Notes: generated by a model from the letters alone, not told the origin. A stretch of DNA of 64,000 nucleotides from Diplonema japonicum (GCA_964019335.1 OZ025726.1:310001-374000); one strand, 5' to 3'. Shown: positions 14,864 to 21,552, numbered from the stretch's first letter. A program made the numbers and translations.

Positions 14864-15609
14864 AAGAAGAAAAGAAGAAGGGGGGGAAAAAATTGCGGAA
14901 AGTCTCGGACTTTCAACCCTTTTTTTCCCTTCTCTTGTCGCCGTTTCTTTTTTTTTTTTTTCCTGCATCTCTTCCCCCCCTATCCCCTGTGTTCTCTTCC
15001 ACATATAGTGTGTTGTTCGTTGCTGTAATAGATAATTTTTTTTTTTTTCCTGTTTTCTTTCTGACACAGTTGTTTAAACAGAGAGGTAGAAGGGGATTTG
15101 GAAAAGGGGAAATGATTTGGCCAGTGGAGACCGAGGGACAAATAAAAAATGGGGAAGGGGGAAGCTGCTGGTGTAAGAACTCGTTATGGAGTGCACGGGG
15201 CACGGCTACACTCACGGGAAACCGGATAGAAGCTGGGCAATGGCTGCCATGAACGAGTAATGCAAACACCACGGTAAAAAAAAATGCAAGCAGGAAGGGA
15301 AAGAAAATATAAAAAAAAATAAAATAAAAAATCATGCGGCATGAATTCGGAGTTTTTCATGTGGTTCAGTTTTTAGACAGTAAATAAATAATAATAATAA
15401 AATGTAAGGGAGAACGTGGAAGTCATTATGTTCTTTCGCCATTCCTTTTTTTTCCCCGTTTCTTTTTCTTTTCGCCCCAATGATCTTGGGAAGAACAAAA
15501 AAAAGAAAAAAAGGGAAAAAAAAAAAAAAAAAAGCCAGAACTGCATTTTTTTAAAAAAATAAATAAAATTTGTACAATTTTTTTTTTCTCTTCCGGTTGC
15601 GACTAAAAT

Positions 15610-18600
15610 CTAAGCCTCTTCCTTAACAGGCTCCTCGCTTTCCTTGGGGTACGGCATGACAGTGTCACGTGCCACACGGTGCAGAACAAAGCACAGGCAG
15701 ATGGTGAGCATGCCCCACGCATAAATACAGAAGGCCCATGAGTATGAAGGCCTGGTGATGTACTGGAGCTCACCATTCAGAAGTGCCATACCACCACCTC
15801 GGGACTCAGTACGGCCAGACTCGTCGAGGAAGAGACACCCATATGTGTTCGTAGTCAACGTGTTGGTGTGAGTCCAGGCGGCAAGGATTAGAACCCACGC
15901 AAGGGACAGACAAAGTGCTGCCACGAAGATCATCTTCCCCAAAACAGGGTGGTAGGTAAAGAAAGCGTACAAGATCACCGCCACCATCCCCAGACCAAGG
16001 AACAAGGTACCAGAGATAGCAAGGCCGGCAATGGTCTTCATGTCGCCCTCAAGATCGCCGTTGGGGCACACGTCACTGATGTCGCGGCATTTGCTGCCAC
16101 CCTTGAAGGTGTTTGTCTCGGGGAAGGTGCATTTCGGTGCAATGAAGTCGAGCGTCACACCCATCTGCACAACGTGCACCTTCGACGGCGCCGCGAAGTT
16201 CCCAGACTCGGCAAGGACAACGGTGTGCGAGTTCGCAATGAACATGCCCTCCACAGAGTCGCCGATCTTCTCTTCAACACCCTCCAAGCTGCCCACATCA
16301 AACACCTTCTTTGTTGTCACCGCAACGACACCTGCCGCAGCAAGGTCCACAGCAGGGTTCAGAACAAGCGCACCCCCAGACACAACCACCCTCTCGATGG
16401 CGTCAAGGGTCGCGGTCGACGCGATGTCGGTACCTGTGGAGAAGTCGGCCTCCCTCAGTGTGATGGAGACATTGGCGGAGCCGGACTTGGCGGTTTCCAT
16501 GAGCAGAACCTTGTCGTCCTTCAGCCAAGCGGCGGCCTTGAAGCGCACATCTGCCTGGGTGTTGGTGGTGTTCTTGAGCGCAGCGGAGTACTCGCCCTGA
16601 GCGTCGCTGAGCAGCACAACCTTCTGCATGATGACAGAGGGGTTGGCGTAGTCGGTCACGTTCAACATGATGCAGCGCACAGCGTTGGAGTTCAGAAGTG
16701 CCGCGTCACCACCGGTCAAGGGCGACTCCAGGCAGGCCACGATCTTGTCCTTGTCGGCGTTCACAGCGACAGAGCCGAAGCCCCTTCCGTTGTGCCTCTG
16801 GCGGTAGATAGCAGGGATCACAGCCTTCACGTTGGCACCGCCACCAAGGGCAGCAGCGTCAGTAGTGTAGATGGCCTGGATCTCACCGGCAGCGTTCCAG
16901 ATTGCGATCTCGGGACCGAACTGGTCAGCACCGATGAACATGCCGTTGTTGAAGGCCTGCACGTCACCCATGTTCAGCCCGAAGGTCGTAGGAGTGTCCA
17001 CAACAGTGTTGGCGGGGCAGGTGGCAACGGTCCAGGCGGCGCTCGCGATGCGGGTGATCTCGTTGTCGGTAGTTGAAAGACCAGCACTGACGCTGTTGCC
17101 GTTGTACTTGAGGTTTGCCCAAGAGTCGACGTGCACGACAGTGGAGGTGGAGTTGGAGGTGTAGGCGTTGCCGAGCTTGAGCTTACCAACAGCAGGAGAG
17201 AAGCCCTTAAGGGCAAGCACGGTTGCTCCGTTGCAGGCAGCGGCAGGACCACGGCCAGTCATGGCGTACAGGTCACCGCTGCAGTGGTCGAATGTGACAC
17301 CGCTGAGGCCAGGAGCGTCGTTGCAGAAGTCACCGGTACCCGTCTCGCAAGGCTGGTCGCAGTCAGTGCAGGTCAGCGTTGCAGTGAGGTCAGGGTTCAC
17401 AGTGCCAGCAAGGGGCTGTGCAGGGAGCGTGTAGCTGGTGAGCTTTCCCTTCTCCGAAGCAGAGTCAACGAAGTGGTTGTCGTGGGGGAGGACGTTCACG
17501 TCACCGGTGCTCACCTCGTTGGCCAGGCTGAAGTCCCATGCAGCACCGTTCTGCTCCTGCTCGAGGACCTGGAAAGTAAAGCTCTTGATGGGCTTCATGC
17601 ACCTCTCAGCGTGCCCGGTTCTTTCTTTGCAGGAGCGGATCTCTGGGCACTCCACAGACCAAGCGTGCGACCTGCAGCCTGCCTGCGTGCACCTGGCCCA
17701 AGCGTTGCTGTACACATCGTCAGACTCGTAGCCAGCGGCGCAGCTAAGCTCCAGCTCGGAAGCGCACTGGGCGACAAACGTGGCGTTGCAGTCCTGCGGC
17801 ACCGAGGCGAAGCTGTGGTCCTTCTTGAAGTCGTCAGAGCACATCTCCCACAGACCAAGACCGTACTCCTTCCTGCCCCTCTCCTCCTGTGCGTACCTCA
17901 TACGCCTCCATTGCGAAGTCGGCAGGGCAAGGGTCATGGCAACGAATGCAAGGATGCACAACCCCCAAGCACCAGCCGACTGGGGCCAGTCAGCCACAGT
18001 CGCGGCGATCCTCTTGGCCTCCTCTTCCTTCCTCTGCATCTCCTCCATGTCAACCTTGTCCTTCTCGAGGTCACCACCCCACAGCTGCATGAAGTTGGGC
18101 AGCCTGCTGCCACACATCTCCTCTGTCCTGAGGAAGCTGCCTCTGGGGAGGAGGTCAGCCCTGTTCCTACGGATCCAAACGAGCGTGAGAATGCTAACCA
18201 CGATGATGGTGATGGGCACACCGACAGCAACGAGCACCTCCCAGCCGGCGATGGAGAGAGCGATGACGAGACCGGGCATGGCAAGGAAGCAAAACAGGAT
18301 GTAGGCAAGGGGGAACCAACGGAGGTTTGCGGCGGTGTCACCCATGAACTTGGCGAGGGCAAGGGGCACGGGACGGAGGGGCCAGATGAAGAACCACACG
18401 ACTGTCCCGAGGACGTTGAAGAAGACGTGCTCCAAGGCGACCCTCATTCCGATCACAACGTTGTCACCAGACAGGGCAGACAGCACACCAGTCACAGTGG
18501 TACCGATGTTGGCACCGTGCGTCAGGGCAACAAGCTTCTCAATGTGGATGAGACCGATCCCGACAAGGGGCGTCAAGGTGGAGGTGAAGACAGAGCTGGA

Positions 18601-19875
18601 CTGCACAAGGATGGTGCACCCGGTACCGAAGATCATCAGGATGTAGTTGTCCAGACCACCGCACGAGCGCAGGATCGGGTGCTTGAAGTCGATGTTCAGG
18701 AAGTACCTAGTCCACGAGGCAACGCCACCCTTCAGCACGGACTGGAGCAGCTTCACGAGCAGGAGCAGGCAAGTGGTAAGCATGGTAAGCGACACGAACA
18801 GAAGCAGCACACCAGCGTCGTCGTCGGAAATGGGGGTGTCGCGGAGCACATGGCCAGACTTCTGCTTGATGATGGTCTTCTTCTCCAGCTTCTTGACCTC
18901 GTCGTTGGAGGAGGCCTGCGCGATCTTCTCGATAAGCTTCTTGTCGACGGATACAACACGGCCGGAGGCGGGCTTCGTGATCTTCTTGATGAACTCCACC
19001 TTGTCACGCTTGTCAGTGCTCAGGTTCATTGAGTCCACAGCTTCGCCGGCGAGCTCCTTGAGGAAACCAGAGGCAGCCTCGAGGGGCAGGAACATACCAA
19101 CAGTGAGCCAGTTGAACATGTCGTGGAAGACAGCACCGGTGAAGGCCCTCCTGTACTCGGCAGGGCTGTTCAAGTGAGCAATTGAAACAATAGTGTTGGT
19201 GACAGAGGTACCGATGTTGGCACCCATCACAAGGTACGCAGCGTCTTCAACGGTGACAAGCTCAGCCGCCGCCATCGAGATGACGATGGACGTGGTGGTC
19301 GAAGAAGACTGCATCAGCACCGTGGCGAGGATACCGATGGCGAGGCCCGCAACGGGGTTCGACAGCAGTTCGCTCTCACGGAAGGCCCTCCCGGAGGACT
19401 TACCTCCGAGGATCTTGAAGGCGTTCCCCATGAGGCCGAGGGAGATGATGAACATGTACAGCACACCCCAGATGCTGCAGAACTTAACGAAGTTGACAAC
19501 AACGGTCTCGACCTTCTCCAGAGGGCTGAGGAACTTCCAGGGAGTGCCGGTGTCGGCCATGGCCTGAAGGGCCCACACGTCTCCCACTGTCTCGTACTCC
19601 TCCCTCGTCATGAGCTTCAGGAAGGCCTTCTCACAGAGAGCTTCACAGTCGAAGGGTTCACCACCCAGGATGTCCCTCCCCATGGGGCACTCCCTGAAGC
19701 CTTCGTAGTCGACAAAGCACGATCCGTGCACGTAGAAGCGCTCGCCGGTCTTCCATCCCTCGTCAGCCTTGGCCTCCTCGACGTCCACCGGGGCTTCCTC
19801 GGCAATGGGCTCGGAGCTGAGCTGGGTTTGCGGCTCACCCTGAGGGGTGGCCTCTGGTTTATCCTCCAGCGTCAT
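15610..19875 (-). CDS. SLC34/NptA Na+/phosphate cotransporter fused to a claudin/PMP22-like 4-TM module containing a phytase-like extracellular domain (1421 aa)
   Basis: Two QSSS motifs (LMQSSSTTTS, LVQSSSVFTS), GANIGT twice, HDMFN. Then TM-W..GLGLWEMC, a Cys-rich segment, GLSG/TGRGP/DQFGP/RGF/VEG motifs, and three more TMs ending SYSWAF. Single intronless GC3-rich ORF. Confidence 0.88.
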   Translation of the reverse strand: MTLEDKPEATPQGEPQTQLSSEPIAEEAPVDVEEAKADEGWKTGERFYVHGSCFVDYEGFRECPMGRDILGGEPFDCEALCEKAFLKLMTREEYETVGDVWALQAMADTGTPWKFLSPLEKVETVVVNFVKFCSIWGVLYMFIISLGLMGNAFKILGGKSSGRAFRESELLSNPVAGLAIGILATVLMQSSSTTTSIVISMAAAELVTVEDAAYLVMGANIGTSVTNTIVSIAHLNSPAEYRRAFTGAVFHDMFNWLTVGMFLPLEAASGFLKELAGEAVDSMNLSTDKRDKVEFIKKITKPASGRVVSVDKKLIEKIAQASSNDEVKKLEKKTIIKQKSGHVLRDTPISDDDAGVLLLFVSLTMLTTCLLLLVKLLQSVLKGGVASWTRYFLNIDFKHPILRSCGGLDNYILMIFGTGCTILVQSSSVFTSTLTPLVGIGLIHIEKLVALTHGANIGTTVTGVLSALSGDNVVIGMRVALEHVFFNVLGTVVWFFIWPLRPVPLALAKFMGDTAANLRWFPLAYILFCFLAMPGLVIALSIAGWEVLVAVGVPITIIVVSILTLVWIRRNRADLLPRGSFLRTEEMCGSRLPNFMQLWGGDLEKDKVDMEEMQRKEEEAKRIAATVADWPQSAGAWGLCILAFVAMTLALPTSQWRRMRYAQEERGRKEYGLGLWEMCSDDFKKDHSFASVPQDCNATFVAQCASELELSCAAGYESDDVYSNAWARCTQAGCRSHAWSVECPEIRSCKERTGHAERCMKPIKSFTFQVLEQEQNGAAWDFSLANEVSTGDVNVLPHDNHFVDSASEKGKLTSYTLPAQPLAGTVNPDLTATLTCTDCDQPCETGTGDFCNDAPGLSGVTFDHCSGDLYAMTGRGPAAACNGATVLALKGFSPAVGKLKLGNAYTSNSTSTVVHVDSWANLKYNGNSVSAGLSTTDNEITRIASAAWTVATCPANTVVDTPTTFGLNMGDVQAFNNGMFIGADQFGPEIAIWNAAGEIQAIYTTDAAALGGGANVKAVIPAIYRQRHNGRGFGSVAVNADKDKIVACLESPLTGGDAALLNSNAVRCIMLNVTDYANPSVIMQKVVLLSDAQGEYSAALKNTTNTQADVRFKAAAWLKDDKVLLMETAKSGSANVSITLREADFSTGTDIASTATLDAIERVVVSGGALVLNPAVDLAAAGVVAVTTKKVFDVGSLEGVEEKIGDSVEGMFIANSHTVVLAESGNFAAPSKVHVVQMGVTLDFIAPKCTFPETNTFKGGSKCRDISDVCPNGDLEGDMKTIAGLAISGTLFLGLGMVAVILYAFFTYHPVLGKMIFVAALCLSLAWVLILAAWTHTNTLTTNTYGCLFLDESGRTESRGGGMALLNGELQYITRPSYSWAFCIYAWGMLTICLCFVLHRVARDTVMPYPKESEEPVKEEA

Positions 19876-19974
19876 AAGATTACTATGTGTTGATAACTGT
19901 GTTGTTTATGAGATTTTTTTTTTTTTTTTTTTTTTTTTGGAAAAAAAAAAGGGTGCGCCTGCGTTGCGTGAAGT

Positions 19975-20524
19975 GTATCTACCCTTTATGCGAAGCCCTT
20001 CACAGCTAGAAGATAAGCAGGAGGGTATTGGTAAAGGGGGCAGGTACGTGGGCAAAAGGTAAGCAGACGTCTCCCGCTGCCAGTAGCCACTGCGAGACCA
20101 CGAAAGGAAAGGGTCAATATGGATATGCATGCAAGCGGTGTTCCAAATAACCAAAAGTTGTGAACACAACTCTACCCTTTATGCGAAGCCCTTCACAGCT
20201 AGAAGACAAAGCAAAGAGGGTATTGGTAAAGGGAAAAGGACAACTTTGAGACAAAGAGTCTCCCCCCGATGTACATACCTTACCGAGTACAGTGAACTGG
20301 TAAGGGGCAAGGTGGGGGTGGCTGGGCGAAATAATCTTTAGGCTTTTGTGTCTCCCGCTGCCAGTAGCCACTGCGAGACCACGAAAGGAAAGGGTCAATA
20401 TGGATATGCATGCAAGCGGTGTTCTTCCTTTATGAGGTTCGTTTTCCTCCAAAGATCACAGGCTCTACCCTTTATGCGAAGCCCTTCACAGCTAGAAGAT
20501 AAGCAGGAGGGTATTGGTAAAGGG
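19975..20524 (-). ncRNA. Cluster 1 of single-hairpin H/ACA-like (AGA-box) snoRNAs; 6 units, order A-B-A-C-B-A in + coordinates
   Basis: Units: A 19975-20038, B 20067-20140, A 20168-20233, C 20256-20319, B 20348-20421, A 20461-20524. Each folds into a stem/pocket/stem hairpin followed by AGA and 3 nt. Confidence 0.85.
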
Positions 20525-21552
20525 GGCGCAGCGGGTGTGATTAGGTTGCTTGTGTGTTTCAGCGGTTTGAAGGGGGAAAAAAATAAGAAGGGAGAGAAAT
20601 AAGGTTTGTAAGCTGAATGGAGAGGGGGGGGGGGGGGGGGGGGAGAAGACGAGCAGATGAAGTGCAATGACGTTACTGTTGAAAGTTTGGTGGAGGGGGA
20701 GGGCTGCAGTAGCAGCTTCTTCATCCGACTATTCAAGGGTACGAGGGGAAAGGAGAAAAAAAAGGGGGGGGGAAAAAAGTAGAATAGATAGGGAGGGATA
20801 AACACGAGGGATGCAAGCACGAATCTTGTTAAAAAAAAAAAGGGTGTGTGAGTGTCCAGCCATTTCAGAGGTGTACCGGAACAAAAAAAAAAAAAAAAAA
20901 AGGTAACGTGGGATAGATAAGAGAGACAGGAATCAGGAATAATCATAAAAAAAAAGGGGAGCTAAATGGAGAAAGAAAAAAGAAAAAAAAAAAGAAGAAC
21001 ATTCCGACAATAGCAAAGGGCTCCTGTATAGAGGCCGCTTGGGGGAGGGAGGGAGGGAGGGACTGATTGGGCCGTTTCTTGCATATGATTTTCTCGTTTA
21101 TCTTTAAAGGAGGGACATAGAGTCTGTAAATCATCACCAAAAAAGAGAAAGAAAAAAGGGGGGGGGGGGGAGCGTGAACACAGCTTTTTCAAGAAACAAA
21201 CTGAGTCCACATATGATAGTAGGAAGAAAAATGGGGGGGGGGGCGAGAGGGAAAAAAAGCAAAGGATTTCACTTTTAAACTAGGAGGGATGGCAAAAAAA
21301 AATGACGCCAATTTTTTTATTGAAAAAAAGAAAAAAAATCTCAAGAGTCCCCTTTAAATTGCGCTCCCTTTTCTTTTGACTAGAAAGGGGGAAGAGAAGG
21401 GAGGAATATAAAATACCAGTGGATGGGGACAGAGTTGATGAAAAGAAGAACAAAAAAAAAAAAAGTGCAAATAATAGAAAGAGGGTGGAGAGACGGGCCG
21501 GTTAGGACGGGGGAGTGGGGCGAGAGGAAAAAAAAAGGGGGGGAACCTGAAC

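Follow-up and report, generated by a model that had tools for sequence, protein, structure and literature searches.

In animals, proteins with the claudin fold (TARP, CACNG, LHFPL and DUOXA) are separate auxiliary subunits of channels and enzymes, and for the phosphate transporters of the SLC34 family it is established that both termini lie inside the cell. Two genes of a third family, PF13449, are induced by phosphorus starvation: that for PtPhos2 of a diatom, with a log2 fold change of 7.4 (PMC7283521), and one of the cyanobacterium Nodularia, with a log2 fold change of 5.5 (PMC9846622). Here we describe a gene of Diplonema japonicum whose single reading frame brings together an SLC34 core, a module of four transmembrane (TM) helices with a predicted claudin fold, and a PF13449 domain that sits in the first loop of that module. 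The gene occupies positions 15610-19875, on the minus strand, of a 64,000-nucleotide (nt) stretch of the genome (GCA_964019335.1, OZ025726.1:310001-374000), referred to as a whole as the window. The reading that we favour, and consider reasonably probable, is that the gene encodes an animal-type SLC34 importer, a claudin-fold module and a non-catalytic beta-propeller ectodomain in one polypeptide.

The open reading frame (ORF) runs through 1421 codons with neither an internal stop nor an intron, as a first-pass annotation of the window had proposed. The assembly comprises 62.5 Mb in 132 contigs. The nearest database proteins are Trinity ORFs from D. japonicum itself (EukProt EP01064), which are labelled 'complete' and have lengths of 1415-1424 amino acids (aa). 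The Trinity isoforms are mosaics of the window copy (C79) and of copies on C94; transcript P0005 matches the C94 paralogs over their full length with 99.6% identity, and transcripts P0001 and P0007 include segments specific to the window copy, with 98-100% identity. All public runs that we compared with the window consist of assembled contigs, from which RNA ends are not provable. Contigs from three probable RNA runs tile positions 15547-19897 and none of the flanks, and each junction between domains is bridged by 30-base overlaps; unlike these runs, a DNA run that is identical to the window covers the flanks too. The three-part layout is thus expressed in D. japonicum as one transcribed reading frame, the parts of which are listed here from the 5' side of the gene to its 3' end:

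15610-19875, minus strand: whole gene, a single 1421-aa ORF without an intron; start and length match the 'complete' transcriptome ORFs.
19897-19956, minus strand: upstream T10/A27 tract, followed by an AG 21-22 nt before the ATG; the match of the contigs from the three probable RNA runs ends here.
19585-19875, minus strand: N-terminal region, aa 1-97, presumably cytosolic (consensus of alignment A1).
18142-19584, minus strand: SLC34 (NaPi-II type) core, aa 98-578 (PF02690 and alignment to SLC34A2a).
17980-18141, minus strand: charged linker, aa 579-632, presumably cytosolic (orientation from SLC34 topology).
17917-17979, minus strand: TM1, aa 633-653 (hydropathy; model helix 13-33).
17791-17916, minus strand: start of loop 1, aa 654-695, with four short beta strands and a claudin-like signature.
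17506-17790, minus strand: Cys-rich helical subdomain, aa 696-790 (model helices 78-155; 109-181 in the model of relative P0046).
17347-17505, minus strand: low-confidence linker, aa 791-843 (predicted local distance difference test [pLDDT] score ~48-53 in its central part, model residues ~201-230).
16144-17346, minus strand: degenerate PF13449 ('phytase-like') beta-propeller, aa 844-1244, within loop 1.
16054-16143, minus strand: end of loop 1, aa 1245-1274, with a Cys-Arg...Cys motif and a short strand leading into TM2.
15661-16053, minus strand: TM2, TM3, the beta hairpin of loop 2 and TM4, aa 1275-1405 (model helices 655-685, 692-720 and 758-785; strands 724-730 and 743-749; the hairpin ends in SYSW, aa 1377).
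15610-15660, minus strand: short, acidic and presumably cytosolic tail at the C-terminus, and stop codon.

The first-pass annotation described the SLC34 core as complete, and our comparisons agree. Na_Pi_cotrans (PF02690) matches in two stretches (E-value [E] 4.6e-29; 101.6 bits, with a Pfam cut-off of 29.1), and there are two repeats, each with both a QSSS motif (aa 189 and 425) and a GANIGT motif (aa 218 and 454). Residues 98-578 align to residues 47-562 of the solved SLC34A2a structure (PDB 9z60) with an E of 2.2e-108. The core is also the most constrained part of the protein, with a ratio of nonsynonymous to synonymous substitution rates (dN/dS) of 0.05 relative to a C94 paralog. Judged from its family membership, it would be expected to import phosphate coupled to Na+. 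The N-terminal region ahead of it contains a Cys-containing motif that is kept among diplonemid copies (alignment A1); a Pfam scan of aa 1-97 gave no match.

Downstream of the core, hydropathy peaks mark one TM helix at aa 633-651 and three within aa 1284-1398, and the same four helices appear in the structure model, in agreement with the earlier description of one TM helix, a long loop with a Cys-rich segment and three later TM helices. The loop between TM1 and TM2 is ~620 aa long and holds 26 of the 37 cysteines and five of the six N-glycosylation sequons of the whole protein. We used two models, one of the C-terminal half of the window protein (pLDDT 80.5) and one of P0046, a relative that lacks the propeller (pLDDT 85.4). 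In the P0046 model the order of elements is TM1, four strands, Cys-rich helices, two strands, TM2, TM3, hairpin and TM4, and it is the same in the model of the window protein. Among the matches listed for P0046 in a Foldseek search (ranks 1-49), all those from the PDB are TARP gamma chains of AMPA-receptor complexes, with E from 7e-3 and TM-scores of 0.6-0.74 on the target. A structure search with the P0046 model (VIA) matched Cav1.1 gamma-1 (Z-score [Z] 16.3), TARP gamma-7 (15.7), DUOXA1 (15.6), TARP gamma-3 (15.4), MP20 (15.2), a designed claudin fold (14.5), claudin-15 (14.4; 171 of 181 residues aligned) and LHFPL4 (14.4). With the model of the window protein, TARP gamma-7 (Z 13.0; 177/181), Cav gamma-1 (13.0), TARP gamma-8 (12.9) and MP20 (12.2; 166/166) were matched, in alignments that run from residue 9 to residue 787, that is, across the propeller insertion.

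Loop 1 opens with the signature W656-x17-G674-L675-W676-x2-C679 (GLGLWEMC at aa 672, window position 17862), whose spacing is like that of the W-GLW-C signature of claudins. The W, G, G and C of the signature are at least 90% conserved in alignment A1, and relatives without the propeller carry the same motif as G-I-G-A-W-x-x-C-S; in the metagenomic relative P0002 the W of GLW is replaced. The next cysteine after C679 follows at +17, and the second loop-1 cysteine of claudins is nearer, at about +10. Toward the other end of the loop, C643, C650 and P651 (A1 numbering) are near-invariant, and the C-R...C motif is found in the propeller-less family as well, as is the Cys-rich subdomain with its conserved cysteines. 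Sequence searches returned no claudin relatives. None of the claudin-clan Pfam models (PF00822, PF13903, PF06653 and PF10242) matched the C-terminal pieces at E up to 10, and none matched ten propeller-less relatives; a search of the genome with the PF00822 profile did not find the window locus; the A2 profile, run against PDB sequences, found no claudin or TARP and matched only in its SLC34 part; the C-terminal half had no match in the PDB by sequence; and for TM1 and the Cys-rich region neither Pfam nor the ESM Atlas gave a usable match. The predicted structures nonetheless indicate that the four-TM module has the claudin-superfamily fold, a call that we base on the alignment of 160-184 residues, beta sheet included, and on the TARP-only Foldseek list. 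Hence, of the PMP22/claudin identity proposed earlier, the fold and the W-x17-GLW-xx-C spacing stand, and what is shared is a fold rather than established membership of a sequence family.

Amastins (PF07344) are four-TM surface glycoproteins of Euglenozoa that, like the module, have a Cys before TM2 and another after TM3, and diplonemids are the sister group of kinetoplastids. By protein-language-model features, the cluster nearest to TM2-TM4 is amastin-like, from Euglenozoa (0.90, which is only a lead), and the next clusters are nematode claudin-like, PMP22 and LHFPL. The amastin model does not find the transporter copies: it detected 17 other loci in the genome, 11 of them above cut-off, and neither the window gene nor its paralogs. 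An hhalign comparison of A2 with A3, an alignment of six amastin-like proteins of the genome, gave a probability of just 17.6%, in a register that aligns the Cys before TM2, the Trp of TM3 and the Cys after TM3. Given the missed transporter copies and the low hhalign probability, we regard amastin membership as unproven. As a separate observation, the genome contains at least 11 amastin-family genes above the Pfam cut-off, on C26, C27, C20, C93, C78, C59, C58 and C34 (loci L024-L031), with a cluster on C93 in which two copies have in-frame TAA stops.

The domain inserted into loop 1 was attributed in the first-pass annotation to PF13449, and this attribution holds both by Pfam score (41.7-45.3 bits, against a cut-off of 27.6) and by the propeller fold of the model. 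The motifs cited for the protein as a whole lie where they were placed, from QSSS, GANIGT, GLGLWEMC and SYSW to those of the propeller itself, namely GLSG, TGRGP, DQFGP, IPAIYRQRHNGRGF, LESPL and VEG, which fall between aa 856 and 1208 (window 17310-16252). We built a 400-position hidden Markov model (HMM) from 79 stand-alone PF13449 domains; aa 844-1244 cover its positions 15-390 (E 5.7e-64), so the propeller is a complete domain. In structure comparisons E. coli YjiK ranks first, with its C-terminal domain (Z 18.3; 231 of 243 residues aligned), glutaminyl cyclase reaches Z 16.1, and Foldseek matches propellers at about E 1e-5. The beta-propeller phytase family, PF02333, is absent among Pfam matches at E up to 10.

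What distinguishes the diplonemid propeller is the loss of residues that its family conserves. At 21 polar positions conserved in at least 85% of the stand-alone set, the 79 stand-alone domains keep a median of 20 residues and a minimum of eight, and the window propeller keeps six (R875, R1027, R1031, R1067, E1127 and E1209). The other 15 are replaced, including eight of the ten acidic ones (D46->G, D128->N, E130->G, E145->Q, E195->G, E318 deleted, D367->S and D369->N). All copies fused to a transporter keep just 2-8 of the 21, with replacements that vary from genus to genus. R1067 is invariant, and E1127 nearly so. Both usable comparisons gave the propeller a dN/dS of 0.20 (the SLC34 core has 0.05), a ratio indicating that the propeller is under purifying selection and on which we rejected a decaying pseudo-domain. 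No other PF13449 gene was found in the D. japonicum genome. A profile of 34 stand-alone PF13449 proteins, compared with the PDB, found nothing credible. A different protein of the family, P0015 (1590 aa, probably from a diplonemid), has three tandem PF13449 domains, a mucin-like stalk and a C-terminal anchor; each of its domains keeps 19 of the 21 polar positions, which makes it a plausible active surface enzyme. We did not find a counterpart of P0015 in D. japonicum.

The same layout is present in further copies and in other genera. Five clean full-length copies exist in the genome, one on C79 (the window gene), three on C94, of which two share 99.7% identity, and one on C95. In addition, a sixth paralog at C81:11000-15496 (loci L010 and L013) is split into two matching segments (aa 4-1131 and aa 1128-1415), and the longest ORF in it stops after 1169 aa; this copy may contain a cis-intron or have a disrupted C-terminal part. 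A stand-alone SLC34 copy of 505 aa on C77 (L014:682-2199, minus strand) is without the four-TM module and the propeller. It branches with the propeller group in the SLC34 tree, on a very long branch of 2.0 changes per column, and may be a truncated, fast-evolving derivative. Gene fragments on C12 (L012 and L017) and C106 (L016), corresponding to aa 355-696, 267-331 and 185-308 with 74-91% identity, are probably pieces of pseudogenes; the C12 fragment adjoins an unrelated ORF of 392 aa. Outside D. japonicum, the layout recurs in D. papillatum, in two proteins annotated 'hypothetical protein' (KAJ9465779.1 and KAJ9473211.1), and in Namystynia karyoxenos and further genome assemblies. A transcript of Rhynchopus humris contains the four-TM module and the propeller; its N-terminus is not sampled. 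Conservation of the three-part layout thus extends across diplonemids.

Used as the query of an exhaustive HMMER search, aa 621-1421 yielded 164 representatives, which we sorted into four groups by the part of the query that they matched. The first group has the SLC34 core, the four-TM module and the propeller, and all its named examples are diplonemids. The second has the SLC34 core and the four-TM module without a propeller, and consists of marine metagenome contigs. The third has tandem propellers, as in Lacrimia lanifica and in P0015, with three copies and a C-terminal anchor. The fourth comprises about 90 stand-alone proteins of ~400-500 aa, for example from Deinococcus and a chytrid, some of which carry the label 'esterase-like activity of phytase' or 'alkaline phosphatase'. 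Wherever the upstream part of a sequence is intact, the four-TM module is preceded by an SLC34 core.

The propeller-less proteins (P0086, P0167, P0051, P0172 and others) contain the SLC34 core, the linker, TM1, the G-I-G-A-W-x-x-C-S motif, the Cys-rich subdomain, the C-R...C motif and TM2-TM4, with a loop 1 of only ~150-170 aa. In the models, the propeller is inserted after the Cys-rich subdomain and ahead of the last strand that precedes TM2. In a tree of SLC34 domains without an outgroup, the propeller-less proteins fall together in a single clade (support 100/100), and the branch between this clade and the copies with a propeller measures 1.07 changes per column. Some of the propeller-less proteins have an N-terminal SPX domain (PF03105), which ties the wider family to phosphate homeostasis. 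The induction of PF13449 genes by phosphorus starvation in the diatom and in Nodularia likewise suggests a place in phosphorus economy.

Given that the C-terminus of SLC34 proteins is cytosolic, TM1 would run from inside to outside, and this would place the ~620-aa loop 1 on the extracellular or vacuole-lumenal side, with which its cysteines and sequons fit. Loop 1 would then display a claudin-type beta sheet, the Cys-rich helical subdomain and the complete PF13449 propeller. We propose that the claudin-fold module most likely lies packed on the transporter and holds the ectodomain in position, and that the propeller, having lost most of the presumed metal-binding acidic residues and kept several arginines (R1067 and three others of the family), most likely binds rather than hydrolyses. 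Near the mouth of the transporter it could bind a partner protein or a ligand, whether or not the latter contains phosphate, and could thereby capture, sense or gate, as a 'transceptor' or tethered receptor. The second suggestion of the first-pass annotation, an organophosphate-binding domain or a transceptor, may therefore apply. More tentatively, the protein might be a single-chain phosphate transceptor, in which a dead phosphoesterase has been grafted on as a receptor that senses a ligand or captures substrate, and the ectodomain signals the presence of phosphorus compounds outside the cell, or concentrates them, and gates transport by SLC34. It is likewise possible, if somewhat doubtful, that under such a scheme diplonemids and a second clade, of uncultured marine eukaryotes, made a claudin-fold 'auxiliary subunit' a covalent part of a solute carrier, the propeller graft being diplonemid and later.

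We considered whether the layout could be an artefact, with the SLC34 gene and the four-TM/propeller gene in reality separate and joined by an assembly chimera or a faulty gene model, a condition under which the first-pass annotation would have been abandoned. The stand-alone SLC34 copy on C77 and the mosaic nature of the Trinity isoforms could be read in this way. However, the same continuous ORF is found in the five clean copies on C79, C94 and C95, to which the interrupted C81 copy can be added; independent assemblies and transcriptomes of other genera have the layout; P0005 follows the C94 paralogs over their full length, and contigs from other runs bridge each junction; and the four-TM module always stands behind an SLC34 core where the upstream part is intact. 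Paralogs, other genera and transcripts together exclude an artefact for practical purposes. A more substantial alternative is that the loop propeller is an active surface phosphoesterase, either a phytase or an atypical alkaline phosphatase, that frees phosphate from organic compounds right above the importer and so couples hydrolysis to uptake, as the first-pass annotation suggested with its 'surface phosphoesterase'. PF13449 does score above the Pfam cut-off, members of the family are annotated as atypical alkaline phosphatases and are strongly induced by phosphorus limitation (PMC9846622; PtPhos2, PMC7283521), the domain is under purifying selection, and, as the genome has no other PF13449 gene, any such activity would have to lie in this domain. 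Nonetheless, we regard an active enzyme as quite unlikely, given the replacement of 15 of the 21 near-invariant polar positions and eight of the ten acidic ones. The loss is common to all transporter-fused copies, whereas P0015, which is not fused, retains 19 of 21, and the replacements are genus-specific, as expected once catalytic constraint has ended.

Another alternative concerns location, and is compatible with a propeller that lacks catalysis: the protein may reside in an internal membrane, of a food vacuole, lysosome or acidocalcisome, and, in this phagotroph, deliver phosphate from digested prey to the cytosol, with the glycosylated loop as a protease-resistant lumenal shield or a sorting determinant. 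Some diatom SLC34-type transporters are found at endomembranes (PtNapi1, PMC7283521), seawater swallowed in feeding would provide a Na+ gradient, and an ectodomain that evolves fast under constraint, has many disulfides and sequons and has lost its presumed catalytic residues would suit a shield. We nevertheless consider this location improbable, to about the same degree as an active esterase, since no targeting signal was identified and the plasma membrane is where animal SLC34 proteins, and most NaPi transporters of diatoms, reside (PMC7283521). Several points weigh against our own preferred reading, of a transporter with a claudin-fold module and a non-catalytic ectodomain. For the PF13449 subfamily we found no solved structure by sequence and no biochemical characterisation, and that its near-invariant residues are catalytic is something we infer; the propeller may use a different catalytic mechanism. 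The metagenomic relative P0002 retains the Glu of the G-L-E motif. Lastly, plain four-helix bundles reach a Z similar to those of the claudin-fold matches; they align over only ~100-120 residues, as opposed to the 160-184, including the beta sheet, for claudin-fold proteins.

The borders of the gene are distinct in composition. The gene block has a G+C content of ~0.6, and both flanks are A/T-rich and of low complexity. All three probable RNA runs lose their match to the genome at 19897, at an AG, and continue with 16-22 unmatched letters; the addition of a spliced leader would fit this break, which, being seen in contigs, is no proof of an RNA end. Homopolymer tracts, of A and T runs, flank the gene at 19897-19956 upstream and 15488-15590 downstream. 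The upstream tract, T10 and then A27, lies ~5 nt ahead of the AG at which the RNA-like contigs cease to match, so that the putative trans-splice acceptor is preceded by a poly(A) tract and not by a polypyrimidine tract. Farther upstream, at window positions 20000-21500, the plus strand is strongly purine-rich, with GC skew of up to 0.50 and AT skew of up to 0.36; a mechanical ORF at 20395-20946 on the minus strand is of low complexity and probably no gene.

We did not find the layout described in the literature on PF13449, on diplonemid phosphate transport or on claudin-like transporter fusions, nor is it mentioned, within the searchable literature, in the D. papillatum genome and metabolism papers. 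The earlier statement that no such protein had been described therefore stands for the searchable literature; for databases it does not, as the two D. papillatum entries exist there as 'hypothetical protein'. In the searchable literature we likewise found no previous fusion of a solute carrier with a claudin-fold module. A natural single-chain combination of claudin fold and transporter offers a handle on how such modules dock to transporters and tune them, and the propeller would clearly exemplify how an enzyme domain can be put to new use as an ectodomain that is apparently non-catalytic. The proteins in marine metagenomes that combine SPX, SLC34 and a claudin fold suggest a wider, unrecognised class of phosphate transporter in ocean protists. 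If the tentative transceptor proposal is correct, it would represent a principle of transporter regulation not described in the literature that we searched, in a group of heterotrophs that ranks among the most diverse in the ocean. The idea lends itself to testing in D. papillatum, a genetically tractable species with orthologs of the gene (DIPPA_19196 and DIPPA_23782).

Comparison with the described systems places each part of the protein. Animal SLC34 proteins (SLC34A2a, PDB 9z60-9z66) have in common with it the whole core, with both QSSS and both GANIGT motifs. They stop soon after the last helix, whereas the diplonemid protein adds ~840 residues, made up of four TM helices and the 620-aa ectodomain; conversely, the large glycosylated loop between the SLC34 halves is shorter in the diplonemid protein than in the animal ones. 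The propeller-less SLC34 and claudin-fold proteins have the same core and module, minus the propeller. Stand-alone PF13449 proteins, whether bacterial, fungal, PtPhos2 of the diatom or P0015, have in common with the diplonemid propeller a domain of ~400 aa, the order of motifs and the propeller fold. They are secreted or anchored, whereas the diplonemid propeller sits inside the loop of a membrane protein, and their median of 20 polar positions out of 21 contrasts with its six. With TARP/CACNG, LHFPL4/GARLH4, DUOXA1, MP20/PMP22 and the claudins, the module is predicted to have in common a bundle of four helices with a beta sheet that loops 1 and 2 build together (Z 12-16 over 160-184 residues), and it has the W-x17-GLW-xx-C pattern where loop 1 begins. 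In the SLC34-fused proteins that loop spans 150-620 aa, as opposed to ~50 in claudin-fold proteins, and a role in tight junctions would be unexpected, because the organism is unicellular. Like TARPs, LHFPLs and DUOXA, the diplonemid module accompanies a transport protein; unlike these separate animal subunits, it is covalently fused to its presumed partner.

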